64,000 nucleotides of DNA from Lytechinus pictus (lineage: Eukaryota), in contig NC_087255.1 in assembly GCF_037042905.1 (NCBI RefSeq), forward strand, positions 5,146,001-5,210,000, read 5' to 3'. The notes below the pieces were generated by a model. It made no database searches. It was not told the origin of the DNA and worked only from the letters and a program-made list of their open reading frames with translations. The position numbers and the translations under genes are program-made. This document shows, piece by piece, positions 3,506-59,253 of the stretch. Position 1 is the first letter of the stretch, and the number at the start of each line of letters is the position of its first letter.

Positions 3506-3703
3506 CACAGTAAAAAACAAATAGAACGTTGTTTAAGCCTGTCACTTTAACAACAGGTTGTTTAAACTGTTTTGTAATTGTTTAAACTTTTTAACCAACT
3601 TGTTTAAAAAGTTTAAACAGCTGTTTAAAAAGTTTAAACAGTAGTTGTTAGAGTGACAGGCTTAAACGACGTGCTTAAAATTTTAAACAGCGTTTTTACA
3701 GCA
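3506..3703. mobile_element. CAC-terminal palindromic MITE (TA target), degenerate right end
   Basis: TA|CACAGTAAAAA start. Internal inverted repeat TTAAGCCTGTCACT.TAACAAC / GTTGTTAGAGTGACAGGCTTAA. Same termini as 10558-10777. Confidence 0.7.
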
Positions 3704-19460: not shown

Positions 19461-21983
19461 TATAAAAATGAGATATCCCATTGGAAACGATAAGCACGAG
19501 GGATTACTGCTCGTTTGAATTTCATGAGCAACAGGTTTCAAAATTTGTCATGATAGGATGATCCCATTGATAGCATTTCAATATCACCTGTCAGTTGTAA
19601 AATACCAAAACATTCACGGTGATTATCTGTTCGTAGTGATGGTTCTGTCATCTTTACAGCCCATGTGCCATTATTCTCACCTTCCAAACAAACTCCGAGG
19701 AAAAAAAACAAGTTTCTTTAAAGATCATTCAAATATTTCAAACACCTGAAACCTTATGATCTTCAACTGAGTTGTTTACTTCCTAGTATCCCCTTGAGAT
19801 TTTGTATTTCTCTTCACCAACACATGTAGAGTATTTTCGGTGAATTATACTGTTTTAAATAAGTTAGAGGAACCTTTGCCTGAAGTATAGATCTAGGTCA
19901 CACGTGTGTCATTGCTTGAGGTTTCTTCCCATCAAGATAAAACCAGGGGAAGCTCGAAGGCACTTATTTAGCAAAAGAGAGTATATATTCCACACCTTGC
20001 GCCCAAATGTGGATGAAAATATTTCCTCCGGTTTCAAGTTATAGCTGTCACAGCCGAAGACGCCTCATCCGTCACCGTCCATGGCAGACTTTGAGTCGGT
20101 GTCTTTTAGGATCTTTTCTCGTGAATTAAATTTAAAGAGATATTGTGATCAAAATATTGAAGAGTTGAAGAAACTGTCTCAGTGCGATTGGTAAAGAGTG
20201 TTGTATGCAATTGTTCGAAGATGCTGTGGGATTTTGGAGTCCATGAAATGATCCGAAATTTGTTTTATTTAACTGTGAGTGTGAGTCCCGCACGCTGCAC
20301 ACAGAGTTCAATGTGCGGAATTACTTACAAAACTTGGTCCAAATATTTGATCTTGAGCTAAATTAATGTGTGTGGATTTTCCTTTTTTCTGTCCTATCTC
20401 ATTCACAATGATAATTTTTCACCTTTCCCCGAAACAGTTCCACTTTTTATCAGAGCACTTTGAAATATGCAGGCCGATTCAGAGAGCAATTTTCAGAGGA
20501 AACGGTAGAAACAATTACAATCGTCTGTATTTTTACTTTGCTCCCATTAGTTATCATTATTGGTAAAATATTTACATTTTCCAATATTTTTCAATTTACG
20601 TATAATAACGCAAATAACTGCTATATTTATTATTTCAATCATTTCGTCGATATTTATTTCACATATATATTGTATTGTGTACATGAATTATTTCATTATT
20701 ATGTTTAATAAAAAGTGCTAAAATGTGGTATTCTGTTTTGGGAACTTTAGATGTCTTTAACGGACAAATATCAAATAAAATACTAAAATCAGTAACCATT
20801 GGTCATGTCGGTAACTCAACTTGTTTTTCGTGACCCGACGTAAAGGACATCCCCAGCATGATTTACAAATACGCTCTAGCCATGAAAACAACCGAGAAAA
20901 TGTTACGAAACAGTAGTCCCACGCTTATCGACATAAACCAAACACATCGCGGGTTATTTGAGGACACTGTATTTTGTTAACTACTCGTATCCATAATGAC
21001 TCCTTTATCGATGAGATATCAATATGTGAATTGTAAAATGTAATGAAATATGGAAATGAACGTGTAGCTGGGAATATCAGTTTTTTATACATGTAACTAA
21101 ATGAAGATATTGATAAACATGTAAATATGAACGAACATAATTTTTGTATTGAATATTATCATGGAAACTACAAACACTTTTTTACAGTTTTAAAACCTAA
21201 AATTTAATACGATGTATGTGATCAATGTTCCGTGAGGTTGTAGACCTATAATTATCATATATATAAATAATATATAATATAATATAAATATATATAAATA
21301 AGTTCTTTGAATACTATTCGATAATTATTGAACTTTATTTTCTGTATTATTAACATCATTTTTTAATATTAATTTTTTTATTCATTTGATTATCAAATAA
21401 CTTCAGTATCATGATGTGATAGTATATACCATCCACAGATACGATAGCAGTACATGTATTTTATACTGCCTTTTGAGAGTCATTCTCACTGACCATTACC
21501 CTCTGACACTCGGTATATCATCTTGCATTCCTCATTGACGAAGGTGTTGCGTTTAATGTTCCGTGGAATGGCCAAACAAGCCATGCAGGGGTCCCTTGTT
21601 AAGCCGATAATGAGGACATCTTTGTTTATTCTTCGTGTATCGTTTACGGCGATCGAGGACTGATACCTGTTTTGATGTATTCTTAATTGCCCCTCCTGCC
21701 AACACCGCAGCCAGGACAACCAAATAAAAGCCTAACATTTTGCTACAACTTACTGTTTAAAGAACGAGATACTCTAAAAATTGAAACATACTTCATACTA
21801 CACGTATAACATTCTATAAAGGTTAATTAAAATTTATCTATATTGAATAAAACACGGAAAGTTCATTTATTGGTGAAATAGGTGAAATGCATGTTTCATG
21901 GGTAAATTTTCTCCGTCTGAAAAAAGAGCAATGATCAAAACTAAATAAAACCAACAAGAGTGTTTTTTGTCTCACATTTTTTT

Positions 21984-22217
21984 CACTCCGTCAGAGTTGT
22001 ATCAGAGAACACAATAGTCAAATTGACTAGACAAGTATTCAGCTGGGTACAACTGATATCTTAGTAACATTTCTGGCATATATTCTAGTTAGAAATAACT
22101 CTGTTTTTTTTTTCATTTTGATTATCGACTAGATAATAGTCAAATATGGCTAGAATAACAGTTGCACCCAGCTAACCCTATAAACTAGTCATTTTTGACT
22201 GATTTCTTCTTAGAGTA
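21984..22217. mobile_element. Degenerate palindromic MITE
   Basis: Nested inverted repeats AGTCAAATTGACTAG / CTAGTCATTTTTGACT and AGCTGGGTACAACTG / CAGTTGCACCCAGCT. CACTC... / ...AGAGTA-like ends. Confidence 0.5.

Positions 22218-28232: not shown

Positions 28233-28280
<48 letters not shown>
28224..28280. repeat. (TA)n microsatellite
   Basis: Direct reading. Confidence 0.95.
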
Positions 28281-28284
<4 letters not shown>

Positions 28285-29178
28285 TCATTGGAATTGACTG
28301 TAATATTGGAATTCAACAGGTTTAGGCATATCCCAGTTTTGAGTGCTTTTAGAAATGTTAAATGATCAGTATCATACGACTTAAGCCGCTGATTTAAAAG
28401 AAAAAATATGAAGAACTCACTTTGAAATTATTGTTTGCTTGCCCCAGTGAAGACTAGTAGAAGCGATGGGAATTTTAGCTTAAAATGGTCCTCAAGTCGT
28501 ATTTTTCTTTTAAAGGGAACAAAAATAAATACAACAACAACCGTATATCCCATGGAAGATAAGACAGTGTTTCTACCGAGACCGAAGAAGCGTTAATTCA
28601 CCCTCCAAAACCAACATGCTAACAAGCAGTATGACAAGGAATAACCTAATTATCACACGATGGAAATTAGATTTTTGAATTGCCTGTGGATGTGTTCCGT
28701 TTGAAGTAAAAACAAGTATAAGATATTGTCAGTTTATATGAAGTCCTCCCTTTGTTTCAAGTTATTGTGAACCTTAAGGCTATTCCATCTTCGAACGAAG
28801 TATAACATAATTACAATTTCATTTCAAGATAGAAACACTAAAACCATAAAAACGCCAATGCGGAAATGAAGAGACGATCGCGCCTGTCACTGGTACGTGG
28901 TAATTTCGTGATGGAATATTATTTTCAAACTTTTATGTCAATAAAATTTCATCGTGTATTCAAACTCTCTCCTTCGAGGAAATGGAAGAAAATTGGGTTC
29001 TTGGTTATATTTTTGTCATGTTTCTATTGTACTAGTATACAGCAAATTACTATTCGTTGTGATAATAACCAAAACTTGGTAATTGAAATATTTCATCATG
29101 ACTATATCTATGTATAACTTTCATCAGTTTATTTAAGCAGTGTTTGTATCTATATCCTCTATTACAATATATGTTCTG

Positions 29179-29323
29179 GGGTCCGTTGCAGAAAGAGTTG
29201 CGTTAAAACGCAAGTCAAAAAATCAGTCGCAAGTCCCAAATGCGCGCTGTTGATTGGTTGAAAATCAAGTTGCGCATGATTTTTAGAGTTGCGATTGATT
29301 GCAACTCTTTCTGCAACGGGACC
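29179..29323. mobile_element. PIF/Harbinger-like MITE (145 bp), CTG TSD
   Basis: CTG|GGGTCCGTTGCAGAAAGAGTTGC ... GCAACTCTTTCTGCAACGGGACC|CTG. Sister copy at 52335-52478. Confidence 0.88.
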
Positions 29324-29628
29324 CTGTATGTGTGATTGAACTTCTGCTTCTTAGTCCAACTAATACAGCTATTGCAATTGAGTAAAATAATTTAACTTTA
29401 GTTGTATTCAACATCGGTCCCTACCTACATTAAGCATGCTAAGAAACAGTCATGGTCATACCGCCGAATCCAGATCCAGAACGACCGATGGTATGTCATT
29501 GGAAATAACTCAAAGGGCTGTGTTGGTGAGGGGTCACTTTCACCGGTTGGACGGCAGTATAACATCCTTCACCTTGTACTTATTCATACTTGTTCATTAT
29601 TTATTCAGCTAAAGGCCTATCATGTAGA

Positions 29629-29854
29629 TAATTTTCTGTCAGTTGTCTATTGATATTCATGTTGCTTTAGTCATGTTGTTTGTTTATGAATAAATAATAG
29701 AGAAGTGAATATTTGGTAAAATGTTTGATTTTCTGTTGGCTTAATTTTCTGTCAGTTGTCTATTGATATTCATGTTGATTTGGTCATGTTGTTTGTTTAT
29801 GAATAAATAATAAAGAAGTGAATATTTGGTAAAACGTTTGATTTTCTGTTGGCT
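29629..29854. repeat. Tandem duplication, 2 x 113 bp
   Basis: TAATTTTCTGTCAGTTGTCTATTGATATTCATGTTG... at 29629 and 29742, with few mismatches. Confidence 0.92.
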
Positions 29855-30035
29855 TTATTGGTAAAATCTTAATCGCCACTGGATTATTTTACCCACTGCT
29901 TGATTTCACTTTGTCCATAAACAGATAAACACATAATTATGTTCCTATTTCACCCGATATAGCATAAAGTTGAATTAGAGTAGGATTTCTTTTAATTGGT
30001 GATTTATGAATTTGTTTTTGTGTGTCTTCGTACAG

Positions 30036-31003
30036 GAGGAAATTCTGATCAGAAGAGAGCTCGCCTTGAAATCATCCGAGCTCCAGCCAGTCCATCATCA
30101 GCTAACCCTGCCCCATCTCACAGCCCAACCTGCCTACCAAGTCAAGACCATCGAGTATCTTCGCCAGATACACGGAGTCCACGTAGCGTCAGTGCAGGCA
30201 CCATGTCCCCAACCAAGTCACTATCACCAGTGGCTTCTCCTAGGATAGAGTCCGCAGAGCAGAGTGAAGGCATCAGGGCACCAGGCTTTGGCATGATCCA
30301 AACAGGATCTTCAATCGATTTCGAGCAAACCGATGGAAGGAGGTTGGGGTTAATGCAGCAGCAGTCTTCGAACACTGCGTCGGCTGCAGCAGCTCTTGCG
30401 TCAAGCGTCGCTGGGCAATCGGGACTTGGCACCGGGAAGGGCCAGCGACCACCGATAGAGGTTCTGTGTCGGTTGTTCCCAACGCAGAAGAGAGCCGTGC
30501 TTGAACTCATGCTCCAAGGCTGCGATGGCGACGTAGTACAGGCCATTGAACAACTCCTAAATTGCCAACGCGAAGGGTCTTCTTCTTCGTCATCGTCGTC
30601 GACGCCGTCAACAGCGTTGACCACAGACTCTGTCACGTATCCAACGACGACTACCACCGTTCCGTCTGTGGCCGAGCCACCATGTATCGCCCATCGCCCA
30701 TACTTATCTACAACTCCTGCGTGTACCGCAGGACTTAAATCTGCTTTCTCTCCCCTCACCGCTTCTCACGACAAGACTTTGATTCAACCACCGGTTACCC
30801 ATGCAGGGTTACCTCCCATGAGGTTAGCGTACCCGTCGTATCCCCGGGGGATCACGTTCTGGAACCCTTACACTTCGGCTATGATCCCAGCTGCGTTTGG
30901 TGTCCAACAGCAAGCAGAGTGCCACTTCAACGGTATCATGGGAGGACCAAGGAAAGACAACACCAGACCCAACGGTGCTTTCGGTGGCGGAAGTCCATGG
31001 TAA
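30036..31003 (+). CDS. dmrta2: 3' coding exon of a DMRT-A family (doublesex/mab-3-related, DMRTA2/Dmrt4/5-like) transcription factor containing the DMA domain; partial, no DM domain in window
   Basis: Acceptor TTTGTTTTTGTGTGTCTTCGTACAG|G at 30035/30036 (phase 1). Open frame to TAA at 31001-31003. RPPIEVLCRLFPTQKRAVLELMLQGCDGDVVQAIEQLL matches the DMA (CUE-like) domain and GLKSAFSPL matches the SAFSPL motif of DMRTA proteins. GC content jumps relative to the flanks. The exact paralogue (DMRT4/5 vs Dmrt93B vs DMRT3) is uncertain. Confidence 0.9.
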
Positions 31004-33181
31004 GTCGCAATGGTTTTCTCAAAGGCACAATCCACTTCCCGTTACTTCCGGACAAGTGCTAAGAGAAAATGCATTTTCCGCTGAATTCTTCTCACAATTT
31101 ACGTGAATATATTTCCTCAAAGACGGATAAAATGAAAGACAAACTTTATCCAGAGTGGGCGTAACTCCTTTCTGAAAGACGAATCAGGGACGCCACAAGA
31201 GCCTTTATTTTATGTTAGAAGGAGATATAGGGACCAAGATCAGAGAATAAATCTTCCACTTAGGGGAAATCTATACAATATGTTTGCAAGAGATCGGGAT
31301 GTTGTGTGTACTTATCCCTGAAATATCCCCGTACTAAAATGTTTACTTCATAATCATTCAGAAAGTTATGATATCATCATTATTATCATATTCATGGTTT
31401 TCTTCAATATTCAAAATTTTATACTTTTGCACCACGCTAATAACCTAACTTTGTGAAGTCTTAGGGAGGAATGTCTTCGAATAAAATCTGTTTAGAATCT
31501 CTGCATGGAAAACATTTTCTAACTCTTTAGGCATTTCTGTTTAAACAAAAATTTCTCGTTCCTCCGCTTATTTCATTAGTCAAATTGTACAAATTTATAT
31601 TCCGTTATATCATTCCAGTACATTGCATTCTCGTGAGACATTGCAAAATGACGATTCCGATGGCATTTTAAATCTCGAAAGAAGAAAGTATAACCCAACG
31701 GTGAAAGATGGAAATAGAAGCAATTCATGGTAATAGCCTCTAAAAAAATCTATATTGAACCTGTCAAAAATGCAGTCATTACAGCCCAATCTTTTCGAGG
31801 GAGTAGAACATAAAAGAGAGATGAAATTGGCGTAAAAGTAGTCGGGTGGTACATTGATAGTGAAAGTAGTCATCATGCGACAAATAAATGCGGCGTGGGG
31901 TTCATTTGCTTTCTCCAGGAAATTAGTTCCACATAAAATCAAGGAAATGTATGATTTAATTGCTACACCTTCTGACTGTTTAACTTTTTGTGTTAGTACA
32001 CATTGGCAAATCTTTAACCCTACTCAGACGGCAAGGGTCTCTTGTCCACTAAAAAGCGAATGTAAGGAATTCGTGGCAGGGGACTGGAAGGGTTTATGAC
32101 TCTGAAAGCGAAGGACAAGCAACCGTGATTTGATTAAAAGTCTGCTCATTTGAATCAAAGTGTTGCTTGTAGCTCGAAAATGCGAGAAATTGTGCGATTG
32201 ACTCGAAGTATTTCTTCGATAAACTGGAAGCTGGCGGGTACATGGAAACAGAATAAGAAGTCACATCGACTGTGATTCATGCCTTATTTGATAATAGCAT
32301 GGATGTTTAGACCGTTTAGTGCTAAACAGTTTCCCCAAGATTTAATTTGTTTACAAAGGTCCAGTGCCACAATGACACAAGTTGCGTCAACAATCGTGAA
32401 TGCTTCACGAAGGAAAAACGTTATCCAACTCTGCGCGTATCCTATTCTGGAAATATCTCCTTTGACATTTAAACAATCTAATTTAAATAATCAAATCGGG
32501 GGTAATTCAAGTGAAAAAGCACGCACATATTATAATATGATTGCCCCTTTTCAGCCTATGTTAAAGTAATGTGGCGGTGCATATTACCAACTTCCTATTG
32601 TAAGTTTAAATCGACTTCATTTAAATGTTAAACTGAACCTCTTAATTATCATATTATTTAATGAGGCCGACAAAATGTCAGCCCTCGTTCCTTTGTACTT
32701 TCCCTGTTCGGAGTGCATATTTATATCTGAATTCATCGTTTGTTAAATTGATTTTCTTAAAACAGGTAAAAGGAATAGATGTTGTAGAATGAATTTTCCA
32801 CCCCTCCTACCCCCCCCCCCCACCCTGCTCGTCAAGAAAGAAGCAATCATAGATTTGGATTCATTTCGGTTTATTGCAAAAAAAACTTTCCTAGTTAAAA
32901 ACAGTCGGGAGACAGATACAAACAAAGGATACAAAGTAGACACAAATTCATAATTTGATAAGTGAAGCAAAATTAATGTACATGCCACAAAACACTCAAA
33001 ATATTTCAAGGAGGCACGTTTACAAAAGTTGAAATAGTAAGGATACTGATATTGTGATTTTTTAATGCTTGTTTACTCATTACTGGACACAGTATGGGAT
33101 TTTTTTTAAATAGTTTTACCATCATCTTTTAACCCTTCATATGACTTCTATAAACAAACTGATAAATTATATTCTTAATGA

Positions 33182-33220
33182 AATAAAACTATGGCGTGTA
33201 CGGTGTTGTTTCTTTCATTT
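33182..33220 (+). terminator. Candidate distal polyadenylation signal of the DMRT transcript (implies ~2.2-kb 3' UTR)
   Basis: AATAAA at 33182-33187 is followed by GT/T-rich GGTGTTGTTTCTTT. I recognised no TEs in 31004-33200, and they resume right after. Proximal AATAAA also occurs at ~31246 and ~31480. Confidence 0.4.
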
Positions 33221-33577
33221 ACATTTAAGAGATTGTGAATATTCTTTTTAATTCGTTGGCCTCACTCATTTATGTGTGAATAATATTCGATTTTTACCTC
33301 AGTACACCAGTCGTCCGAAGGAGCCCGTGTTACAAAGGGTTGCGTTTGAACCAATGCACAAAAATAGAGCGTAAATCCCAAATGAACCTCGAATCTTTAA
33401 AAAATCAAGAAAAGTTTGAGTTCGTAAGTGACATTTAATTACAAAACTTTCTGAATCGGGCCACCGGTCAAATGTACATGATGTTTGTCTTGTATTATAA
33501 ACATACATCGTGATCTTATATTATTTATCCCCTTTGTGATATGCATCCTTATGATCCGAAACGGTCATGTAGCCCTG

Positions 33578-34063
33578 TGCCACGTCTTACAAAGAGTTGC
33601 GATTGATCCGATCAACCACAAATAGGGAAAGCCAGAATGTCATCATCTGAATGCACAAATATTAAACTATTTTTCTAGATATGATGTGTACACTCTTAGA
33701 AAAGGTTTACACAATACTGGGTACAATGGGAACATGCATGTTTGCCGGGTAAAATGATACCAAATACGTTGTAAATTTTACGCACTGTTGCGGTGAATCT
33801 CTTAAAGATGCATTTTGCCCAATATGGGGGTAAAATAACCCAACAAACATGCATGTTAACTTTCTACACAATAGTGGGTGAATTTTTACTCAATCTTTTT
33901 TTAGAGTGTATTAATACATTCATTGCTTTCATGAAAAAAGAGGGGTTTCTCTGTGTTTACAAAGGACATTGCGCAAAAGTCCTGTAGGAAAAAAATGACA
34001 CTGATGGTTTTCCATACATTTGAGTTTGATCGGATCAGTCGTAACTCTTTGTAAGACGGGAAC
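33578..34063. mobile_element. Harbinger-like MITE (CTG TSD) carrying a nested CAC-MITE
   Basis: CTG|...CGTCTTACAAAGAGTTGCGATTGATCCGATCAA ... TTGATCGGATCAGTCGTAACTCTTTGTAAGACG...|CTG. Confidence 0.8.
33691..33908. mobile_element. CAC-terminal MITE, TA TSD, nested in 33578-34063
   Basis: TA|CACTCTTAGAAAAGG ... TCTTTTTTAGAGTG|TA. Internal AACATGCATGTT in both arms. Confidence 0.8.
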
Positions 34064-34066
34064 CTG

Positions 34067-34240
34067 GTGGGTGTTTCGTAAAGATGTTTGTAAGATAAGA
34101 GCGACTTTAAGAACGACTGGGTTTTCCTTTCTTTTGGTAAATGGTATACACCATTGGCGATGGTTTAGCGTGTAAGAAAGGTTCACCAGTCTTTCTTAAA
34201 GTCGGCTTAACTTACGAACAGCTTCATGAAACGACCCCTC
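34067..34240. mobile_element. Second Harbinger-like MITE abutting the first
   Basis: GTGGGTGTTTCGTAAAGATGTTTGTAAG...GACTTTAAGAACGACTGG / CCAGTCTTTCTTAAAGTCG...CTTACGAACAGCTTCATGAAACGACCCC. CTG at 34064-34066 and 34241-34243. Confidence 0.75.
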
Positions 34241-34374
34241 CTGGAATATATTTGTGTTCACATGTACCTTTGCCATGGTTATAAATCCAGCTTCCATTTC
34301 TGTTTCTTGTGTTTCCTTCATCTCTCAGAACCTCACACACCATTCACCATTGTCAGCTGAATTCGCGAAAGGTT

Positions 34375-34880
34375 CAGGAAGAAACATGTTCTCCTACATC
34401 GAAGGTCTCCAAGTTGTGAGCTTACCTGATACCGGACTGGGATTAACTGTGAACTGTCCAATCTTTCTAAACATCTTGGTTGTCATTGCGTCCCAGAGTC
34501 TTGGCACATGATCAGGCCATGGAGCTATTAACACAGACTCCATGATCAGACGGAACATCACTTTGAACAGGAATGGGTTATGTTTTCCAGCAACGGAAGT
34601 CTCCAAGTTGTGAGCGTACCTGATATGGACTGGGATTAATTGTATTTTAAAAATCTCCACAACTTTTCTTAACAAGGTAACATCCAAGCTTCTTGGCGCT
34701 TTATATGATGGAACATCACTTAGGACAAGAACAGACTATGTTTCCAACAAAGGATATCTCTAAGTTGTGAGCATACCTGAAATAGATGGGGATTAATTGA
34801 AATGTGTTCATCTGTTCTGAACAAGGTAGCATCCCAGTTTTGGGGGCAAATCGTCTGATGGATCTTCACTTTAAACACAC
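34375..34880. repeat. Old degenerate tandem repeat, ~3 units of ~157 bp
   Basis: TCTCYAAGTTGTGAGCNTACCTGA...GGGATTAA core, with AAGTTGTGAG at 34411, 34605 and 34762. Confidence 0.8.
34518..34544. mobile_element. 27-bp micro-insertion with CATGGAG/CTCCATG ends and 7-bp TSD (P-like footprint)
   Basis: ATCAGGC|CATGGAGCTATTAACACAGACTCCATG|ATCAGAC. Absent from the paralogous repeat units. Confidence 0.7.
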
Positions 34881-35503
34881 CGAGGATTTTATTGATTCAT
34901 GGGACAGTTCATCCGAAAGGATGTTTTCTTTTCAAATGAAAAGATATATTGATTATTGATGAAATAGTTTGAAAAGTTTTATGTCATTTTCACGCTACGG
35001 CGCCTCGTGTTCATCAGCAATTTGGGGAAGCTGCGTCTATAGCATTCTAATTGACTTTTTCATTTTACCTGCGGAATTCATGTTGTAGCTGTGGACATAA
35101 CTTTTTAGAAAAAAAGGAAATTAGACCTGTTTCTACTGGTGAAAATTGAAATGCTGTACAGAAATCCACATGATTATCGCTATAAGCTACTTAATGCGTA
35201 AGCATATTAATTTCATCATTGCAATATACTACCGAGAATGTTTATTTCTTTTCTTATTTCATCGTTGCTAAGAATGACTTTTTGTTATCCAAACCAGGAC
35301 GTCTATTAATTTAGCATATTTAGGCAGGAGTGATCACGTCGATTAGAAACTTTTTTTTCATTTCTCTTATTCATATTCATTCTGCTTTGTACTTTGTTTG
35401 AAATAAAGAAGAAGAATAAATTCAATCATAAATTCAATCAAACAACACGGTCGTGAAATATCTTGTAGTATGGAGTCTGCTGCCATATTGAGTTGGTATA
35501 GCC

Positions 35504-35762
35504 TAAGGGTGGAAATCTCTCCCCAAAAGTAGGGGGACCAGAGACTGGAAAATTTGACAAGCAAAAAAAAAGGGGGGGGGGGTTAACACCCAAAAAGGTA
35601 ATCTCGTCAAAAATACATGTTTTATTTAGAATTTGAATGATGTATTTCTTTCCATCATAAAAGACCAAAAATAGTAGGGGGACATTTGATATTGTGTCCT
35701 CCCTACTATTTTGGGTAGGGGGCGCACCCCCCCCCCTGTCCCCCCTGGTATTTCCGCCCATG
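35504..35762. mobile_element. hAT-like MITE (259 bp)
   Basis: TAAGGGTGGAAAT ... ATTTCCGCCCATG. 8-bp TSD GTATAGCC/GTATAGCT. The left end matches CAGGGGCGGAAATCTCTCCCAAAAGGTAGGGGG at 62441. Confidence 0.82.
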
Positions 35763-35935
35763 GTATAGCTCAACTTTGTTGCCAGATGAGCAACAAATGC
35801 TTGTAAGACATAAAAGAAAAAACACTTGATATTAAATATTAATACTTCATATGGTACTCGTGCGTAGACTTTCGAACCCATGTTATTCGGATTTAGGACC
35901 AGGCTCCTTGGCCGCAGTTGTTCACGCTAATGTGA

Positions 35936-36100
35936 GGGCGCAGTCACATTCCTCCTATATGGGGTCGTACGGGGAGTCGAAAGCAACCGTTTTGTTCATT
36001 TTTATTCAAACCACCTATATGTGGCTGGTACAAAAAAATGTTAAAAACGGTTGATTTCGACTCGCCGTACGCCCACCATAGGGGAAATGTGACTGCGCCA
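35936..36100. mobile_element. Harbinger-like palindromic MITE
   Basis: GGCGCAGTCACATT...CGTACGG.GAGTCGAAA.CAACCGTTTT and its inverted copy. TGA/TAA flanks. Confidence 0.8.
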
Positions 36101-36469
36101 TAAAGGCCCTGCTATTTAATGTTCAACAACAGGGACTAGTTTAAAGGGTGACATGATATTTGCTCCGGTCTTAATATCTAAGAGGGCATAGAGTTAGGAT
36201 TGTTAATAATAGAGTTTTCGGTTCAGAATAATGTAAAGATACGGATTAGAGTTTTTTTTTGTTTTGACGGGTAGAATTTATGCATGGCTTAACGTGCAGA
36301 TTTTCCATCGGAGCAATTGTCGCCGATGGTGGTATAGGACACGATTTAATAACAGCAAAGTTTAACATGATGATATATAAACCGCGTCAGGATCTTTAAA
36401 TGTGATCATAGATCCCACAGTGTGTCCAGTGAATATTGGGGAAAATTTTTTTTCCCTCCTGACCATCAG

Positions 36470-36624
36470 GAGCCTGTTGCATAAAACTTTTTACCTGAGA
36501 AAACTCTGGTAAGAACTGAAAACTAAGGTTAGTCTGATTTCTGCCATTGACTTTAACACAGGGCAAAAACTCCGATAAAAAAAACCTGAGTTTTCTCAGG
36601 TAAAAAGTTTTATGCAACGGGCCC
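36470..36624. mobile_element. Harbinger-like MITE (155 bp), CAG TSD
   Basis: CAG|GAGCCTGTTGCATAAAACTTTTTACCTGAGAAAACTC ... GAGTTTTCTCAGGTAAAAAGTTTTATGCAACGGGCCC|CAG. Confidence 0.9.
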
Positions 36625-38042
36625 CAGGACTACTTAGCAATAATCCGACCTGCTTTTATTCATGTCCAAACAACATGTGACTTTTCTTGATACAAGCACA
36701 ACCAACTTTGGCAGAACTAATATCATCTTTTAATATTCGAAATAGCCAATGCAGTGGCGATTCACATTATGAAAGTATTCGCATGATACACAATTGGTAA
36801 CTGTCCATTAAATTCTAGAATTACTGTGTCACCCTTCTTCGAACTTTGTATGAGGGCGAAAAGAAAATACACCAATCGAGGAATAAAATCTTTAAAAATA
36901 CACCTTAATATGTCTGCACTTCTTGGTTAAAATAAAATGGTTCAGCCAAGTAAGAAATCTTATTTTCACTATCTAAACGACCTTGAGTGTAAATTATGTA
37001 TTCAAGTTAATTCCCCACAAATGCAATGATTGTTCAATAATTTACAAATGGAGCTTGTTACGACTATCAGAAAACAGCCAAGAAGCAAAATTAAATACCA
37101 CCAAAGGTTTGTGATCACCTTTTGATTAAAGTACATAAGTTAAACAAATAGAATTGTGTTCTTACTCGTTCAGAGTAAATATATGAATACTAACTTTAAG
37201 TAAGGCCGGTTAACTGTATGCTTTAAGACCAGAGTCGACCTGATTTGACTTTAAATCGTAAATTGTCGTGTGCTTTGACTCATTACGATTAGGAATGGAA
37301 TTCTAGCAACGGCCTCGGATGTGTAAGTTTAAGTTTATACCACGTACAGCAATGGCCAGAATATGGTTCATATTTTTCTTTCATTTATTCTTTTTGTTTG
37401 CATATTAATATCAAATACTTTAATGGGTTTTACGACTAATCGAGTCACGTGAGTATACGCGAAACCCAGAAGTACGTGATTTATATCTTCTTCATCTGTT
37501 GATTTTGACTGACGATCAGTCATATTTGACTATTGTCGCCATAATCGTATCCATTCATATTAAGTAAGGTATCGTGCATGGAAGGCACAAAAAGGAAATT
37601 TATTTTGTTAAGCTCGACCATGTAGTGGAGGATCATGAACTTTGCTATCTTAAAATACTCAGAAAATTTGAAGATTCACTGTTTTTCCCTTTCTCAGGCG
37701 TTCATACATTCATACGGAAGGGGTATCTCTCTCTCTGCATGAAATAAATGATAGAATTACGTTGTTGAATATAGAATAAACTTGTTGAAAATTGTAATTG
37801 AATGTATTCGTCTCGTTCATAAATAAGGGCAGTAAGAAAGGTTGCCTAGAGTGACAAAAAATAGCTAAGACATTAATTAATGTTTTTTTTTGTAAATATT
37901 GTATTTCTCCAGAAACGGATTCAATGTAAGTAATAAATATAAGTATCTGTTAACAAATTAGATTTTAGTGTCTGTCTTGCATTGCTTTTAATGAATTCAT
38001 TTACAAGCTAAGAGATGAGTAGGTAAACCATGAGCGAAGGAG

Positions 38043-38370
38043 GGATGGATTGAATGAATGAATGGATGGATTGATGAGTGGATGAATTAGTGAATGGATA
38101 AATGGATGACGAATGTATGAATGAATGAATGAATGAATGAACAAATGGATGGATGAATGAGTGAATGGATAAATGGATGTATGAATGAATGAATGAATGA
38201 ACAAATGGATGGATCATGGAGCTATAGCTCCATGGATAGATAAATGGATTGATGAATGGTGAATGAGTGAATGGATAAATGAATGTATTAGTGAATGAAT
38301 GAATCGATGTTAGGATGGATGGAATGGTAGGCGGATCATGAATGAACGAACGAACAAACGAATATGAATG
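38043..38370. repeat. (GAAT/GGAT)n compound microsatellite
   Basis: Direct reading. It produces the spurious HSFIHSFI ORFs. Confidence 0.92.
38215..38234. mobile_element. 20-bp perfect palindrome insert (P-like footprint)
   Basis: GATGGAT|CATGGAGCTATAGCTCCATG|GATAGAT interrupts the microsatellite. Confidence 0.55.
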
Positions 38371-39679
38371 GAAACGATGAAAAAGAGTATATGAAATTAA
38401 TGATAGGAACGATAATCCCAAATTCATAATTGAATGAAAGTCGTCAATGAAAATCCGAACAATTCCCTGACGGTTGCACTTTCCGAGCATGCAATGTGAC
38501 TATTTATACACTTGTTCACCACAAAATCAGTTTAACAAGAATTTATTGGCTTCGGGCAATCTCAGCACACACCAGCTATTAAAAAGGCCGAGTTATGGAA
38601 AGGGGGAGGGGGCTGATGGTAGACTGTGAGGGGAAAAAATGTGGACTTGAGGTGTTCTTGAAAGGCTACTTCTAATTATGGCAGGTTGAAATGTTTTAGC
38701 AGCGCATAATGCTAATTGAACATGATCGATGCATGAAGACAATGTGTTGATCTAGCACCCCTTCAGGCCACACCGGATGTGTGCGAGGAGCTCGTTTTTT
38801 GGTCATGAACACGGCCGGTGAGCGCTCTTAATTCGGATCTTGACATGAAGTTTGGCTCTCACTGACAGCTCCTCGCTGTGCAGACAAATTGATTCCCACC
38901 CCCTAAATACCTCAGCCATCTCGACCAATGTCACTCTTCTCCTTTTTTGCTCTCAACTTTTCCTTGTTAATTATACTCTTTTTCATGTCCGTTTCTACAT
39001 CTCTCATTTTCCTTTTTCGTTTCCTCTCCCCCCCCCCCACTCTCTCTCCAACTGTCTTTCCTTCTATCTTACCCTCTGTGATTTTTACCTGATGTTTCTT
39101 TAGGTCCATGTCTTAGCCCCCCCCCCCCCCTCACCCACACACAGTCACACAGTCACACACGCACATAAGCACCCGCACCTCACCGTATACACACATATTT
39201 TTTGCGTCTATCTCATGTCACACACAGTCACATCCACATGCGAACACACTATCACTATCATACACACCCACAAACATGCACACACCTCGGTCCCACCCAC
39301 ATCTACTCACATTCACGTATATACACCCACATCTCACACCTCTTCACTGTTTGATTTCATCCTCCATTCATTCTCTCCCAACTTCAGTTATTCAGTTTAT
39401 TTCCCCACTGTTCTTCATTTCCCTTTTCTGTAGTAAATTCGGGAACCCCTGGGGACGTTGTGTCAAAATGATTTTTTTTTTCGTACCAAGTCTGAGGAAA
39501 ATTTGAGCGCGAAAAAACTATACCTGAAGATAATAGAGAGACAGACAGAGATTGAAATTATAGGAAGTATTTATAAATTAAATACGGGAGATGCATGTAT
39601 ATAGAACTTGGGACAGAGAGAAGTAAAAAGAAATAGAGATTTAGGTTTCCATTGGTATCAGTAACATCGTAAAAGACGA

Positions 39680-39985
39680 GATGATGATGATAACGAGAAT
39701 GATGACGGTAATGATGATACTTACCTAGATAATAAAGACAACAACGATGATAACAAAAATGATGATGATGGTGATAGTGATAGTAAAAAATTGATTATAA
39801 CACCACTGCAACTACTACTACTAATATTATTATTAATACAAATCATTATCAAAACTTATAGCTTTAATAATGATAGTAATGATGATAAGATAATGATAAT
39901 ACCAAATAAAATAAACATTATAATCATGATGATGATTTGTAAGAATTATTGATAGTAATAGTCATTTTAATGATAATGATCAAAA
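39680..39985. repeat. Degenerate (GAT/AAT)n low-complexity tract
   Basis: Direct reading. Confidence 0.75.
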
Positions 39986-41758
39986 TAACCCAAAATAATC
40001 AATTTTCCTCATTTTAACACAGAATTGTACTAAATCAATATAAAAACAAAATAATTAGATAATACAAAATCGTAATTCTTAAGTAATGCTTGACTGAGCT
40101 GAATGTTCAAAGAATGCGATGGAAGAGAAATAAAACTGCATTAATGTGAAGTAAATAGTGATTATGTACAAAACGGAAAATATGATATAATGATAATATT
40201 TTTATCATTATCATTTTATTATTATCTAAAGCTAAAAGCTGAATTTTCAGTTCGATCGCTTCTCTCGCTCAAAAATAAAATTGGACCTTTTAAGGATCTA
40301 ATTAACATGTAAAGTTTACATCCCCTCATGTTCTCTTTTAAGTAATATTACTGCCTTCGGCAGCATTATTTAATTTACCTTGGAAGTAGGCATAAAGTTA
40401 TACACAACTTATTTGTCCCTTTGTATCCAAACGTTGGTACCTAAAATTTATTTGGCGTTTAAGAATTGTTTAAGAATTGTGTAAGAAAACAATTATTGCA
40501 GAGATAATGATATCTATTTTTATCATTATTGTTATTACTATTATTATTATTATCGTCATCATCATCATTGTTACGTTCAGGAGGAATCAAATCTTGTTTC
40601 ACGGTAAAATGAGGACTTTTCGATATCTTAGATATCATTTGATAAAAGACAAAAAGAAAATGAGTGACTGGCGTCATCGGTTTTATCATTTATGTACTGA
40701 CCATAATAGTTCACTGAAATTAAGCGATCTGTTACGTCATAATTTTCTTATGTTATATCATATTGACGATGTAACAGAACAATAACCAACAATCAATAAT
40801 AGGAACATAAGCATAAAAAGGCGGGGGGAAATGAAGTAAACGCAGTTTGGATCTGATATTTATGTGTCTCTATCAAACAATTTATAAACTTAGCTTTCCC
40901 GGTACACATCAAAATATTAGGGAAACATTTCAGAAAATATGCAAATTAATCTAAAGGTAACCAATGAACTGGAAAAGAAGATAGAACAACCCTGTAACTA
41001 AAATGTAAACAACTCAATTCATTGAAATAATCAATGAGAAGGAACGAATTGGATGATAATGCAGTGAGGTATGTTCAACATGTTCAAGAAAAGAACCAGA
41101 TGTGAAGACGGAAAGAATGAGAGCATCTGAATAGGGAAGTATTGAGGATGAAAATGAGAAGTAGGACAGTGGTTGATGCAAAATGATGAAAAAATAACAA
41201 ACGTATATCTATTGAAAACTGAACTAAACAACATACCAAACTGATGTGAACGGAATACCTGACTTAACTGAATACTTAAACAATCGAACAGCTAAATGTA
41301 CAAAGAACTTTACCACATCAAGGATAGCTCTTTGATAGGATGGACATGACCTTTGAAAGATGGATTTTGCTTTTATTTTTAAGCCTTGACGGGATCAGAG
41401 CACAATCATGGACACAAGACACGGTGTAGGGCCTACACCACACCGCATCAGGTATGACTGTATGATGTCGGATCTTCTACAGCAATCGAACCACTCCTAC
41501 ATAGTGTTTCCATTCTCCTGCTGTCGTACCGGGCGGTCTTGGGAGAGGTGATGCCAGGTGCCCGGTCTGCAGCTAGCAGCTGCTCTCAAAAATCATCAAG
41601 TTTCGATCTTGCCCTGAAATGACAGTTCTTGTCACAGTCATCAGGATCATGTGAAACACCGCGTGGGTCGTAAGAGGGAAACACCCCCTTCTCGAATAAT
41701 TTGCTGTTTTAAAAGTATAAGTATTTGCACCTTATGGGACCCGCGAGCACTGTCTTAT

Positions 41759-41807
41759 CAAGGAGATATCACCTGGAGATATCACCTCTAGAGGTGATAT
41801 CTCCTTG
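41759..41807. mobile_element. 49-bp inverted-repeat micro-element with 7-bp TSD (P-like footprint)
   Basis: GTCTTAT|CAAGGAGATATCACCT-GGAGATATCACCT-CTAG-AGGTGATATCTCCTTG|GTCTTTT. Confidence 0.7.
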
Positions 41808-43045
41808 GTCTTTTACTTCGTTTCTAAATATTTATGTTTTCAAGGGCTGGTCTATTTATCTTCTATTTTATTTATACATGTAGTTTTATACATTTATATA
41901 CACATTCTATCGTATTTATATTTTTTGTCGTTTAATTATATAATACCCTTATTATTTAAATTGACAAAAAGTGACGTCACGTTATCCCCCCCCCCCCCCC
42001 CCCCCCGCATCGGGATATGCTTGCGCCGACCCTGCGTATATAAGAATCACGATGCTCCTGCACCGGGTCGACGTCAAAAACCAAATCCGAAATTCTGAGA
42101 AAAAAAATAGGAGATGAATTAGTCCCAAAATCTTTAGATACAAATTAATTCGACCTTCATTGAATCAAGCGATCCAGTTTCGAAATTGATACATTTTTGT
42201 TCTCTGTCACTCAGCCCGCTCTAGTCATGATAGTCAGTGCTTGTTGTTCACTGCAACCATGCCTATGGGGAATCTACATATAGATCTCCATTTATGCAGT
42301 ACACAACACCATCTTGAAAAATATCTTTAAAATATCACTTTTTTTACCAAAAATACTTATTTCCATATAGTTGTGATTTATTTTTCATTAGCTACTTTGG
42401 TATCTTTTTTTATTATGTGCGCTCAAAAACTGTAATTTTGAGCATTTTTGTGTAGCCCATACTTGGTGGAAAGTAAAATTGCAAGAAAATTGTCATTTCA
42501 CAACCTTTTACTTTTTAATAAAAAAATAATTAAAAGAATTCGATTTACTCCGGAGCCACGTTATGATGAATAGTTGTACTGGAGACTGACAGTGTAAAAA
42601 AAATCAAGCAATTGTCCCCAAGAAGAAGGGAAAATAAGCCCAAAATTGCCAACCTTATTTCCCCACACAGGGAGTCCTAGTAACAGAGAACAAGGTTATG
42701 TCATTACCTTGTTCATTGAATGAGTGATTTTTCTTGCGACTGTTTAGGTTCCCAGAGCAAATTTAGAGATGGCGGGGAAAAACACGGTAAGAAGAGAAAT
42801 AGTTGAAAGGATATAAAAGAGAAGATGTGTTGAAAAAAAATATCTGTACGTAAATGCATTTCATTTAGAAATAAATTATTGTCCCCCACTTATTATTGGA
42901 AATTCTCCCTGATTTTTGGTACAATTCACTGAGATAAATAATCATATACCTCGATTTCCCAGTGGGAATATAGAAAAAAAAATGACCTGTGTTTATGACC
43001 TCATGAAAAACATTCTCTTTGGGAAAAAGCACTCTTAAAGATATA

Positions 43046-43253
43046 CACTCTTAAAAAGTACTGGCAAAAATAACTGTTAGTATGATGTCCGACCGAAAAT
43101 GATAATAATATTCAACTAAAAGTTAATATTCTAACCAATAATTTGATTAATTTTGACGATCTGTGTGTGTGGGTGTGTATGTGTGTGAGGGTGTGTGTGG
43201 GTGGGTGGGTCAGACACATTCATATTCACGAAAATATTGGCTATTAAAGAGTG
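43046..43253. mobile_element. Degenerate CAC-terminal MITE containing a (GT)n tract
   Basis: TA|CACTCTTAA ... TTAAAGAGTG|TA. Confidence 0.5.
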
Positions 43254-43844
43254 TATGCTTTTGAAAAACGATAATACAGGACGATACAACAATCATATTG
43301 AGACTGAAGGCCTCGTTCAAATCCACCTGTTTGAGTCTAGTGTTTCAGACATAGAAATACAAACGAATGGCTGCGCACTCAATATATAGGCCTACAGGTA
43401 AAACCCTCGGGCAAGTTAAATTACATTCAAATTAAACCCGCTAAATCAATATTTTTATCGATAATCTCATGAATGGGGTCATGCTATCGAAAGTTTCCCT
43501 AATATGTTGGAACAATTCTTGCATCTGTTTTTCATTTTGAGCATTTTCCTAAATATTATGAGAACTCTCCGATAAATTTTGCTATATAACAAAGGAATAT
43601 TGAATAAAGGTTGAAAACATTTTGTAAAGAGATTGTCGATGCTGGATTGAAGGGTTTTTTCACCTGCAAGGTTACTTGTACTTTTAAATATGTTAGCATG
43701 GTGATGATAGGTTGCTGACATCTGATGAGAGGTGACAATGTTCGAGATAAATTTCTTTAACTTCCATTCTTGGTCTAACCTGGGTAAATATTTTTGGATA
43801 GCATTGGTAAATACGGGATATTGTTATTAGCATTATTAGCATTC

Positions 43845-43850
43845 TCATTA

Positions 43851-43885
<35 letters not shown>

Positions 43886-44002
43886 ATATGTAATAATATG
43901 TACATGTATTTCATGTAAGATTTTATGTATACTTATTTTTAAAGATGGTAAATAAATTGAACTGAATTAAAAATTGACTATTACTATTATTAGTATTATA
44001 TT

Positions 44003-44039
<37 letters not shown>

Positions 44040-44161
44040 ATATGTAATAATATGTACATGTATTTCATGTAAGATTTTATGTATACTTATTTTTAAAGAT
44101 GGTAAATAAATTGAACTGAATTAAAAATTGACTATTACTATTATTAGTATTATATTAAGTG

Positions 44162-44190
<29 letters not shown>
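43845..44190. repeat. Near-perfect 154-bp tandem duplication bounded by (ATT)n tracts
   Basis: TATGTAATAATATGTACATGTATTTC... at 43887 and 44041. Confidence 0.93.
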
Positions 44191-44192
<2 letters not shown>

Positions 44193-47100
44193 ACTCCTAT
44201 TTTCTTGACCTACAAATCCCTGGAGTCTTTTTTTTCATTTTCAAAAGCTTCATTTGAAATGATCAACCTTACTAAAGGTATTTTGTGATTTTAATTGTAA
44301 TATCTAATCACCTTAAAATGTACTTATTCAACTATTCAACTATTTAGTGACCTTATAGTTCAATTGATTCGTTTAATACTTGTCACGTAATCTCTTTTTA
44401 AAAGGGGTGAAATTTCAATCGCTTTTCACTTCCCTTGGTAATGAGGTCTCAAGGATCACTCAATGTGGATTGAGTTTAGAGTGAACATAATTTCACCCAA
44501 GAGTAATATTCACTCAACAACAATTAAAAGTCTGTTTAATCCAGTTAATTTTATCCACTTCCTCTCATGAGTGAATTATTCACTCGGTTTTCCAAGAGAG
44601 TAAATCATACAATTATTTGTCAGAAAAAGATAATAATAATTTATTAATTTATTGCACTTGGCGAATATTGATACAAAAATGAAATGATCTTCATTTAAAA
44701 ACCTGGGAAAAATACACCCGGGAAGTCGTCCCTCGTTAAGATCTATTTTTTCTTGTTTCTTTTCATTTTCAACTTTTACTTCCAATTTCATTTTCTGGAT
44801 GCTTCTCACCTGTCTCATTTAGTGTAAAATATCATATTCTATCACTGATGCTGAACTCATTTGACTTCTAAACCTATATTGTTTTGACGAGTCGATAGCA
44901 AGATTATAACCCTAGGCGGTGAACCTCTGTCCGCTTTTTGACCTGCTAACTTCACCCAAATCAAGCTTGTCAGAAAAGGAAGTCTAATGGTATCTCTGAC
45001 GGTAAAACATGCCAGAAGAAATGAAATATATGAAATGTGAACGACCGAATAAGAAGTTGTAGAAATATAGGGTTAAGAGTAGTTTGGATTATTATTGTTA
45101 AAATGCACCTATTTCGAAAGGAATCGGCTGAATAATTGATCTGTTTAGATTGAAATTTTTATATCGCTTTTTTTATTTATAACTCCAACCAAAATATATT
45201 CAACGCATTTGAATTAAACATCCCCTATTCACCCAGCTGCCTGCCTGCATTTTCAGTCCGTTTTACCTTCATCCTAAACATGTCCATTTCTCTCAAGTTG
45301 TTTTCTCTCACCTATATATTTTCGACTGTTAAACAGTGGTTCCAGTGTTTCCCCTGACTTCATCTACCAATAACACTCATTTCTTTCTATCTTTTTGTAG
45401 ATTCTTCAAGCTCTCACCTATTGCCTTTCTTTCATGTGTTTTCATTGTGTTATTTCCATTTTTACTCTCTGATTGCCCGGTGAAACTTTACTGGACGAAT
45501 ATGCTGTGATTTGCCCACGACGGCAAACGGCACGTCCAATCTTGCCAAATATGACAATTTCCACAACGTGTCCCCGGTGGCTCTGGATCTGAAGCAAGAC
45601 ATAATTACAATCTCCTCTACTGCGCCCTCCAAGTATCTCATTATTTACACGTAAGTGTCGCACATGATTCTTATCCTCACACTTCTTCCACTGCTAATTG
45701 TTTATATAGCGATCCTGCTCCTCCTCGGCCGCTTTTGCTTTGAGCGTACCGCGTCCGCCAAGGCGGCTACGCCCGTGCGCAATTTTCGTTCGCTTGGAGG
45801 CGCGACGCACTGCAGCGCGTCTATCCGGGAAAAATTTGTTGAAAAGGTGCCGCGCCGAGCGAGGGCCCGGCAAAGAAAAGATGCGCTCGCTTCTCTGTAC
45901 GGTTTGCTTTAATTACAAATGAAAACAATCTAACAAAAGCAACATTTTCTGTATAAATGCCGACTGCGCCACGCTCGATTAGCACAAGTCACATCAGTAT
46001 GTTGACGAAAAAGGAGTCACAGATTGCACTTTTATTCTCGGCCGAGATAGAAGAAAAGAATAAGATAGCGAGAGAAAGAGAGCGAAGGGGAGATGATATG
46101 AACTTTCCTTTCGATCGTACTCTGTTGTTACAGCTTAGTGCTTGAAAAAATGCCGAAAACCGTCTCTTATTGATCGGTTGGTCTCTATAAGCATTCATTT
46201 TTTCTTCTTTCCTGCAACAATAAAAAATAGAAATGATAGAATGTTTGAGTTAACATTTCGAAGATGGTTGACTTTTCTGAAGTGCGGTCAAAGGCCTAAG
46301 GAATAAATAACAAGAGTTAACAGAACCCTAAATCACACTTTTTTAAGGGTATGATGAGAGGGTGGGAGCTCATCTGACCTTTTGGTTTTGTCGTAGTTTT
46401 TATTGATAATTCACTTCCAAACATTCATAATCTGTAAGAAAAAGAATCACAGGAAATCTAATAAATTAATTGCAGCTGGGCAGATACATAACAAAAAAAC
46501 ATTACAGAATACAATATTCCAATGAGTTTGCAGCTGAGCAAGTAGTCTAAGATTTTTCAAAATATAACACAACAATGTGTGCACAGATAAGCAATAAAAT
46601 GAAATAAGCAAAATATATGTAATAAACTGTAATGAGTAAATGCATTATGCACCCCCTCCCCCTCCCTGGCCCATGCAAGAGCAGAGCCAGACTCTGAAAA
46701 CAAACAGTCAGTCCGCAAGCCCCTGTGTTAATGAGCAAATGAGCAAGATTTATCAAAGTCCTCTCGTGGCTGAATTCATGTCCCTGCAAAATCTCGTGAA
46801 TTGTGAGACTTTCTTTCTCAAAGAATTTAACCACTTTCTCCTTGAGTAATATTGATTATTTTTGTACCATGGGCAAGAGTAAATGTTACCCTTTTATATT
46901 GGTCATTTCTTTTGAATGAAATATTTTGATAAATAAGTGATTTTTTTACCTGAAAAGATGCATCAAACAGAATTTTCTTCCTCTGTTTTCACTTGCAAAT
47001 TGTGCAACATTTTGTGTTTTAGGCACCAACATTATTTATATCATCAGAAAGCTCAAACTCTATACTTTCTTACAATGTCACTCTTGATATGTGGCATCTT

Positions 47101-53279: not shown

Positions 53280-54500
53280 TGTACTCCATGTTGTTGCCGT
53301 GCTGATAATCATGATATATTTATCGCTGTATTGATAACGACGACATTAATTGTTGCATCGGTGACGATGACAATGTTTTTATTGATGCCTTATGACGATA
53401 TGTTTATTGTTGCCGTATTGATGCAGTTTCCGTATCAATGATCAGGTATGTTTATTGTTGCCTTATGATGAAGCAATATGTTTATTGTCGCATTTTTGAT
53501 GGTGGGGAGTAGAATGTTAATTAATGTAGTACTGGTGATGACGATATGTTTATTGTTGTCTTTTCGATGAAGGTGATATGTTAAATGTCTTTTTAGTAAT
53601 GAGCTAGATAAGCATATAGAAGTAATTGTAATATTGATAATGACCATATATTTAATATTGTCGTATTGATGAGGAGGATATGTATATTCGTATTGATGAT
53701 GACAGTGTTTATTGTTGTATTGATGATGATGATGATGATATTCATTGTTGAAGTATTGATCATTGTTGATGACAAATAATTGCCGTTTTGAAGAGTGCGA
53801 CGTGTTTATTGGGGCCGCATGAATTGATGGCAACATATTGTTTTATCAATGGGGAAAATATGCCAATGTTAATTATTGTAGTATGGATAATGACGATTTA
53901 TTTATTGCTGCCGTATTGATGATCATATGGTTCTATTTATTGTTGCAGCATTTTTTTAACAAGTCAGTGCACACCCAGTTACCAATAATGCATATAGCAT
54001 TTCCATTTATTTGAAAACAGGTTAAAAGAGCATTGTAGATTAAATGCCTTGCTCACGGCATAGGTGGCGCGGTCGGGGATTGAACCCCGAGATTACCATG
54101 TATAGCCAGGCGCCTTAGACCACTCGGCCACGGCACCTCCTATTGTTGCCGTGTTGCCGTGTTGGTGACGTGTTGATGCGACGTGTTGATGACGATGACG
54201 ACGTGTTGATGACGATGCGATTACTGTTGCCCTAAGGACGACAATATGTTAATTTAATTGATGATTTCGATATTGTTTATTGTTGCCGAATTGTCGGCGA
54301 TATCCTTATTGTTGCCGTATTAATGTTGACGAAATTTCGTTTCCGTATTGATGGTGACGATATGGCTGCCGTATTAACGACGACGGTATGTTTCTTTTTG
54401 CTGTGTTGATGCGGCCAGTGATGAACCATGACGAAGATTAAAGATATGTTAATTGTTGCCATATTGATGACGATATGTTCATTGATGTCCTACTTGTGGC
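53280..54500. repeat. Degenerate minisatellite, unit ~ATGTTTATTGTTGCCGTATTGATGACGAT (~30 bp)
   Basis: TATTGTTGCCGT / ATTGATGACGAT variants recur many times. Interrupted by a SINE. Confidence 0.8.
53950..54140 (-). mobile_element. tRNA-derived SINE
   Basis: Minus strand reads GGAGGTGCCGTGGCCGAGTGGTCTAAGGCG (A box) ... GGGGTTCAATCCCC (B box), then non-tRNA body GCCGTGAGCAAGGCATTTAA and an A-run. Flanked by TATTGTTGC on both sides, which could be a TSD or simply the host repeat unit. Confidence 0.85.
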
Positions 54501-58520: not shown

Positions 58521-59253
58521 CTTCTTAGACTATAGGAAATACTCTCTATATTCAAACACACCGTCTCCTAAACAACCCCCCCCCCTTCTCCACGGGTCTC
58601 CTTTCTTTCATCATTTCCTTCATGCTCACATCTAAACCCACACATACCCATCTTCCACTGCCTCCTAAATGCCCCTCTCTATATCCCCCTCCCTCCATTT
58701 TCTTCCTTTCTCTATCTCTGCCCCTCCCCCTCCCCCACCTTCTCTCTCTTTCACACACACTGAAGTTTATGATGAATATAACCTAGTCGAGGACCACCTA
58801 CTTAATAGGACTGCAGGGCAGAAATCAATCCTCCATTCCTCCAGACAATGAACAGTAATTTTGTGACGTTTCACTCTGCAGACATATGACATGATAACAA
58901 TATGATAACAAGTTACCATGGCAACATAAATTGCCCTGGACGGTGCCCCTCACACATACAACAGCTGATCGGGAATAACTTTTTTGTCGCAACTCCACAA
59001 TCAACAAAATGATGATTCTGGAGAATGCTGTGGTTCTGAGACAAAAAAATGTTATTTCAAAAATGTTTGACGGAGGCTTTTAACGAAGTGCTAACATTTG
59101 TTTATTATTTTTATCTATTTATCTAATTTCATTCAACATATTTTATTCCTATATCATGTAAAGAAATCATTGATATTGTCCGATGTTTAAAGAATGGTAC
59201 CAGTGCTGGCTATGACGGTGTTAGTATTACTGTTGTAATATATATACAATCAT

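Follow-up and report, generated by a model that had tools for sequence, protein, structure and literature searches.

The stretch of Lytechinus pictus DNA analysed here (64 kb, hereafter the window) carries the last coding exon and the transcribed last exon of a DMRTA2-like gene (Table 1). It was compared with the orthologous locus of Lytechinus variegatus (L001, 25 kb of GCA_018143015.1), which is collinear with window positions 28237–44750; a global alignment gave 87% DNA identity across 13,647 aligned columns (~13.6 kb). The open reading frame of the coding exon matches the Pfam domains DMA (E = 8e-20) and DMRT5_DMB (E = 1.8e-6), and is 98% identical to the DMRTA2-like P0001 of L. variegatus. 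In L. variegatus, the gene model stops at L001:15161, the base that immediately follows the acceptor ctctcag, and P0001 ends with ...GGGSP. It follows that the stop codon TG/A is split over the splice junction, and that the exon starting at 34328 is 3′UTR. Read without splicing, the frame gains one extra codon (W) and then reaches TAA (window 30996–31003), so that both forms end within one residue. The X10 and X12 contigs start exactly at 34328, carry 992 and 1847 more letters upstream, and reach 35540 and 35661, respectively, with 0 differences and 0 gaps relative to the window. Since contigs that start exactly at an acceptor and have extra letters upstream behave as spliced RNA, the insert described below is transcribed, and it lies within the 3′UTR exon of the DMRTA2-like gene. 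Farther along the window, there are a borderline tRNA-like match on the reverse strand (54065–54137; 29.5 bits against a threshold of 29 bits) and a reverse-transcriptase ORF on the forward strand (RVT_1, E = 5e-33; 59239–60324).

Table 1. Features of the DMRTA2-like locus and the three insertion sites (window coordinates).
Feature	Position	Strand	Remarks
Last coding exon, DMRTA2-like gene (DMA and DMB domains)	29996..31000	+	Donor CCATG/GTAAGT
Transcribed last exon (3′UTR), DMRTA2-like gene	34328..35661	+	Acceptor ctctcag/A at 34328
Three-unit tandem repeat	34385..34900	+	Units 194 and 157 bp; 160 and 160 bp in L. variegatus
Left copy of 7-bp target-site duplication	34511..34517	.	ATCAGGC, one base off the right copy
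27-bp insert	34518..34544	.	Starts CATGGAGCTAT, ends CTCCATG; between them ~9 nt of putative filler or more left stub
Right copy of 7-bp target-site duplication	34545..34551	.	ATCAGAC, as in the L. variegatus empty site
Second candidate scar	38208..38241	.	GATGGAT, 20-bp perfect palindrome 38215–38234 (CATGGAGCTA/TAGCTCCATG), GATAGAT; terminus as at 34518
Third candidate scar, related family	41752..41814	.	GTCTTAT, 49-bp core 41759–41807, GTCTTTT

The insert sits in the first unit of a three-unit tandem repeat, in which the marker AAGTTGTGAGC recurs at 34411, 34605 and 34762 with spacings of 194 and 157 bp. When the three units were aligned, units 2 and 3 showed one clean 34-column gap with conserved blocks on either side, which confirms the paralogous empty sites that had been pointed out from the sequence. 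The ~160-bp three-unit repeat is present in the 3′UTR of both species (L001 15220–15700). Its units are only ~70% alike, yet they contain the invariant blocks AAGTTGTGAGC-TACCTGA, GGGATTAA and GGAACATCAC, which could be conserved UTR motifs. The possibility that the units form an array of coding exons was ruled out, their length being no multiple of 3 and no consistent frame running through them.

The 34 bp of unit 1 consist of a 27-bp insert and one copy of a 7-bp direct repeat, the layout originally proposed for 34511–34551. Written out, the insert is CATGGAG-CTATTAACACAGA-CTCCATG, that is, 7-bp inverted ends around a 13-nt loop. In the 7-bp frame, the two flanking copies differ by a single mismatch, G versus A, where L. 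variegatus has A. The longest perfect direct repeat has 9 bp (CATGATCAG) and runs into the right arm. Tandem duplication as the source of the 34 bp was rejected, the preceding 34 bp being unrelated. As RNA, the insert forms a small hairpin with a predicted fold of −11.5 kcal/mol (z −2.7); it thus adds 34 nt and a weak predicted hairpin to the 3′UTR, with no function implied.

In L. variegatus exactly these 34 bp are absent. The alignment opens a single 34-column gap, and 139 of the 147 flanking columns are identical (~95%); the sequence across the empty site reads ...CTTGGCA-CATGATCAGAC-GGAACATCAC, with ATCAGAC in single copy. The unit spacing agrees with this, the difference between 194 bp in L. 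pictus and 160 bp in L. variegatus being 34. A second site, at 41759, behaves in the same way: exactly 56 bp (49 + 7) are absent from L. variegatus, after which the flanks align again (...TTAT/ACTTC...). Hence the prediction of a true insertion with a target-site duplication holds at both sites, with 27 + 7 and 49 + 7 bp missing in the sister species, and the empty sites appear where they would be lacking if the segments were ancestral. Two read runs of organism B contain the insert with 0 differences, no polymorphism being seen. The contigs of organism A are ~88–90% identical to the window and resemble L. variegatus; they end at ~34510 and restart at 34557 or 34581, with no bridging contig among the matches listed, and these breaks fit an empty site at 34518. 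The scars seem to be fixed in the samples checked. In this two-species comparison, parsimony assigns the events to the L. pictus lineage; alternatively, they may have preceded the species split and then been lost in L. variegatus. The genomic outgroup contig L011, which carries P0002, stops 230 bp past the exon, before the insert site.

Two further sites share this layout. At 38215, the palindrome has the 11-mer CATGGAGCTAT of the 34518 insert in both of its arms. CATGGAG occurs twice on the forward strand of the 64-kb window, both times within these structures. Since CATGGAGCTAT is found at two loci, the inserted DNA must have come from a defined donor sequence and not from the flanks. The core at 41759 has 18-nt perfect arms, both starting with CAAGGAGATATCACC, and also holds a 13-nt tandem copy (two copies, TRF) of part of the left arm. 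In the best explanation of the three sites, 38215 would be a scar of the same family as 34518, and 41759 a scar of the same kind from a related family. The grouping of these sites made in the preliminary description agrees with their common layout and, at 34518 and 41759, with the empty sites; at 38215 the palindrome lies inside a (TGAA/TGGA)n expansion that is not in L. variegatus, and the empty site can be read at the other two only. This microsatellite (38045–38310) is ~200 bp longer than in L. variegatus.

There is one mismatch in each of the three duplications (3 of 21 pairs) but none in the arms of the palindromes at 38215 and 41759 (0 of 28). The mismatches in the duplications exceed what drift since the species split predicts, the local identity between the species being ~95%. 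Our guess is that error-prone repair synthesis into one target copy may have caused them; mismatched templated synthesis has been reported (PMC2895639).

How specific is this layout? We scanned the window for outermost inverted repeats (arm ≥7, loop ≤40) flanked by a 7-bp repeat with at most one mismatch, and found exactly three sites, 34518, 38215 and 41759. In 200 dinucleotide shuffles, the mean was 0.4 sites, and three or more sites were reached in 2 of the 200; frame-shift controls on the real sequence gave ~1 site. The enrichment of matching 7-bp flanks over shuffled sequence that had been anticipated is therefore present in the 64-kb window, but it is modest and only suggestive, and the shared sequence is the stronger argument. 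Without the outermost filter, the same scan returned an additional 14-bp palindrome at 3614. This perfect palindrome (TAAACAGCTGTTTA) lies between perfect 7-bp repeats AAAAGTT (window 3607–3634), possibly as the scar of a different family that duplicates 7 bp. A 68-bp segment that looks like an insert, with TGAAAAAA...TTTTTTCA at its ends, is bracketed by perfect 7-bp repeats CTCCGTC (window 21911–21992); it could represent a scar or a small MITE.

The alignment of the two species contains 63 lineage-specific insertions of at least 8 bp (38 in the window and 25 in L001). A 7-bp repeat with at most one mismatch together with a CA...TG core was found in 2 of the 63, those at 34518 and 41759, and no other insertion of the 63 pairs a verified 7-bp repeat with long terminal inverted repeats. 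Several larger insertions were considered as members of the same family and rejected. A 127-bp L. variegatus insert had been scored with 8-nt inverted ends, and by eye has a 7-bp direct repeat but no true inverted ends. The L. variegatus inserts at L001 13860–14436 (577 bp) and 20510–21093 (584 bp) are MITEs flanked by TTAA duplications; their inverted ends match at 15 of 16 positions and start with AGG, and they look like elements of the Kolobok or piggyBac type. The L. pictus-specific segment of 1.4 kb (35448–36878) was excluded for its lack of inverted ends; it consists of very high-copy repeats with a word depth in the thousands, and a repeat boundary within it, at 36628, reads GGGCCCCAGG and has a SINE-like look.

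The three sites fall within 7.2 kb of the 64-kb window (P about 0.036), and the remaining 57 kb contains none. Such clustering fits local hopping and not a uniformly high abundance, and the suggestion of a very abundant class could not be upheld in the window. In Drosophila, P transposase cuts with a 17-nt stagger and favours targets close by (PMC7776569).

We consider it likely that the insert at 34518 is the excision scar of a cut-and-paste transposon resembling those of the P superfamily, which landed in the 3′UTR of the DMRTA2-like gene and was later excised. The reading as a transposon excision scar is well supported, and a P-like parent, assigned from the length of the duplication, the CA...TG ends and the length of the stubs, is probable. 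In the proposed course of events, a DNA transposon would have landed in the 3′UTR exon and duplicated 7 bp of its target; upon its later excision, end joining would have kept both target copies and, from each terminal inverted repeat, a short stub. At 34518, the left stub would be at least 11 nt (CATGGAGCTAT...) and the right stub at least 7 nt (...CTCCATG), with a few filler bases between them. A P-like transposase would cut one strand deep inside the element, and would leave on the donor identical, non-complementary 3′ overhangs of transposon-end sequence. Being identical, such overhangs could pair only at self-complementary motifs, which would result in equal stubs and perfect palindromes. 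At 38215, two CATGGAGCTAT stubs would overlap at AT to give the 20-bp palindrome (10 + 10 nt). At 41759, the product would be 18 + 18 nt around a central TA or CTAG, an overlap that implies stubs of 19–20 nt, and the 13-nt repeat would be templated filler from repair synthesis. The putative stubs thus measure at least 11 and at least 7 nt at 34518, 10–11 nt each at 38215 and 18–20 nt each at 41759, against 17 nt in Drosophila P; with three sites, and with 18-nt arms at 41759, a limit of ~17 nt on the arms, as first suggested, is not demonstrated. The insert lengths of 27, 20 and 49 bp all differ, as fits independent repair products. The parent elements would be expected to have the terminus pairs CATGGAGCTAT...ATAGCTCCATG and CAAGGAGATATCACCTCT...AGAGGTGATATCTCCTTG.

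Excision junctions of P{w^a} sequenced in Drosophila consist of an 8-bp duplication, a stub of at most 17 nt (CATGATGAAATAACATA), microhomology or an insert, a second stub and the second duplication; the inserts are inserted or templated nucleotides, 1 to about 49 nt in length (PMC2895639). Joins at AT or TA, which are perfect palindromes, recur among them; one table lists 7 and 3 isolates (PMC2895639). The order of duplication, stub, join or filler, stub and duplication at the urchin sites matches these junctions. In both systems, the two target copies and a stub of each inverted repeat are retained and the ends start with CATG; both also show palindromes from joins at self-complementary dinucleotides, and templated filler. 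They differ in that the urchin duplication has 7 bp rather than 8, and in that the urchin stubs reach 18–20 nt rather than at most 17. Moreover, the P{w^a} junctions are laboratory events, whereas the urchin scars arose naturally in the germ line of an echinoderm, are apparently fixed, and have a putative P-like parent. The termini CATGG and CAAGG fit the CANRG pattern that had been ascribed to the superfamily, but the canonical P end, CATGA, does not (PMC2895639). The 7-bp duplications at 34518 and 41759 (34 = 27 + 7 and 56 = 49 + 7) are within the 7–8 bp of the P superfamily (PMC3698922, PMC7776569). Galileo and 1360, members of this superfamily in Drosophila, have 7-bp duplications as well (PMC3698922); the likeness lies in the length of the duplication, the ends offering no sequence similarity to compare.

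Two other classes of short insert resemble these scars in part. The footprints of Tc1/mariner elements (TA-CATG-TA type) are also small palindromic scars from cut-and-paste excision and end joining; however, they have a TA target and keep 2–3 nt per end, unlike the 7-bp duplication and the 7–18 nt per end here. MITEs have inverted ends and a target-site duplication too, but they are usually at least 50 bp long and occur in many near-identical copies, whereas the present inserts measure 20–49 bp and each is unique in the window and L001.

Among the alternatives, the least remote, though still unlikely, is that gap repair was interrupted, each end having used the sister chromatid or homologue to copy a bit of the element before the ends were joined, so that the insert would be an extreme internal-deletion derivative. 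In that case the stub length would say nothing about the transposase, and the scar reading would be kept. The 18-nt arms at 41759, which are longer than the 17-nt P overhang, favour this alternative, as does the 13-nt templated repeat, which shows that repair synthesis occurred; P excision sites are known to carry templated insertions (PMC2895639). Against it, independent copying would rarely give equal stubs, while 38215 (10 + 10) and 41759 (18 + 18) are exactly symmetric; the stubs are all at most 20 nt, and the 7-bp duplication would point to the P superfamily anyway.

It is quite improbable, in our view, that the 20–49-bp palindromes are tiny non-autonomous elements (nano-MITEs) that a transposase inserted as such. 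Inverted ends, 7-bp duplications and the 11-nt terminus common to two of the inserts would all be expected of such elements. However, the three lengths and interiors all differ, and the 64-kb window and the 25-kb L001, a small sample, contain no second copy of any of the three; the minimal MITE first offered as an alternative thus becomes unlikely. In addition, the transposases of those P-superfamily elements that have been characterised bind internal sites and not the terminal repeats, the binding sites lying beside the 31-bp repeats in P (PMC7776569) and ~70 bp from the end in Galileo (PMC3688188), and a 20-bp unit would have no such sites. Harder still to credit is a P-like family whose smallest mobile units are these palindromes, its transposase needing only ~10 nt per end; if true, this would explain the three within 7 kb as local re-insertion.

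There is only a slim chance that the segment is ancestral and that L. variegatus lost it by slippage between flanking direct repeats. A palindrome flanked by direct repeats is easily deleted, and a perfect 9-bp direct repeat (CATGATCAG) does bracket the 34 bp. Nevertheless, units 2 and 3 are without the segment in both species, and a second, equally exact loss would be needed at 41759, between imperfect repeats. Even if such a loss had happened, the segment would still be an insertion scar, merely an older one.

Equally remote is a parent from another superfamily, for instance hAT with its 8-bp duplication. An 8-bp frame is as good as a 7-bp one at 34518 and 38215, and CAAGG matches the hAT terminus consensus YARNG. 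On the other hand, 41759 is better accommodated with 7 bp (one mismatch in 7) than with 8 (two in 8), and CATGG is outside YARNG. Excision of hAT elements proceeds through hairpins formed in the flanking DNA and is not known to leave long stubs of the element ends, which does not fit the long stubs at these sites. The Dada superfamily was ruled out, the present inserts having inverted ends and lying in 3′UTR and non-coding DNA; Dada elements make 6–7-bp duplications, have no terminal inverted repeats and target small-RNA genes (snRNA or tRNA) (PMC3706591).

The excision of a P-like transposon continues to be the reading that we prefer, and its parent was sought in the sequences at hand. All pairs of CA[AT]GGAG and CTCC[AT]TG within 15 kb of each other were tested in the window and L001, and none showed extended inverted repeats or a duplication. 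No P/THAP transposase was present among 128 ORFs of at least 75 aa searched with Pfam, the only domains matched being RVT_1 and those of DMRT. In a metagenome scan, nine chance matches to the 18-nt terminus of the 41759 family came up, each of them single and lacking an inverted partner. The P-superfamily origin put forward at the outset is thus favoured by the 7-bp duplication and the end stubs, but it is accompanied by no longer element and no P/THAP transposase in the window or L001.

In Drosophila, excision scars of the P type are known from the laboratory and have entered the textbooks. The event described here is of an ordinary type, for which the evidence is unusually clean, and the urchin scars represent a natural germ-line counterpart, in a deuterostome, of the laboratory scars in flies. 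Repeat finders miss such scars, which nonetheless lend themselves to counting and dating. The one at 34518 alters the 3′UTR of a developmental regulator, the DMRTA2-like gene, with no effect on the gene implied. If the parent was a relative of P, the deep staggered cut would be conserved outside flies, perhaps at 18–20 nt, and a microhomology-based, template-copying end joining would be active in the urchin germ line.
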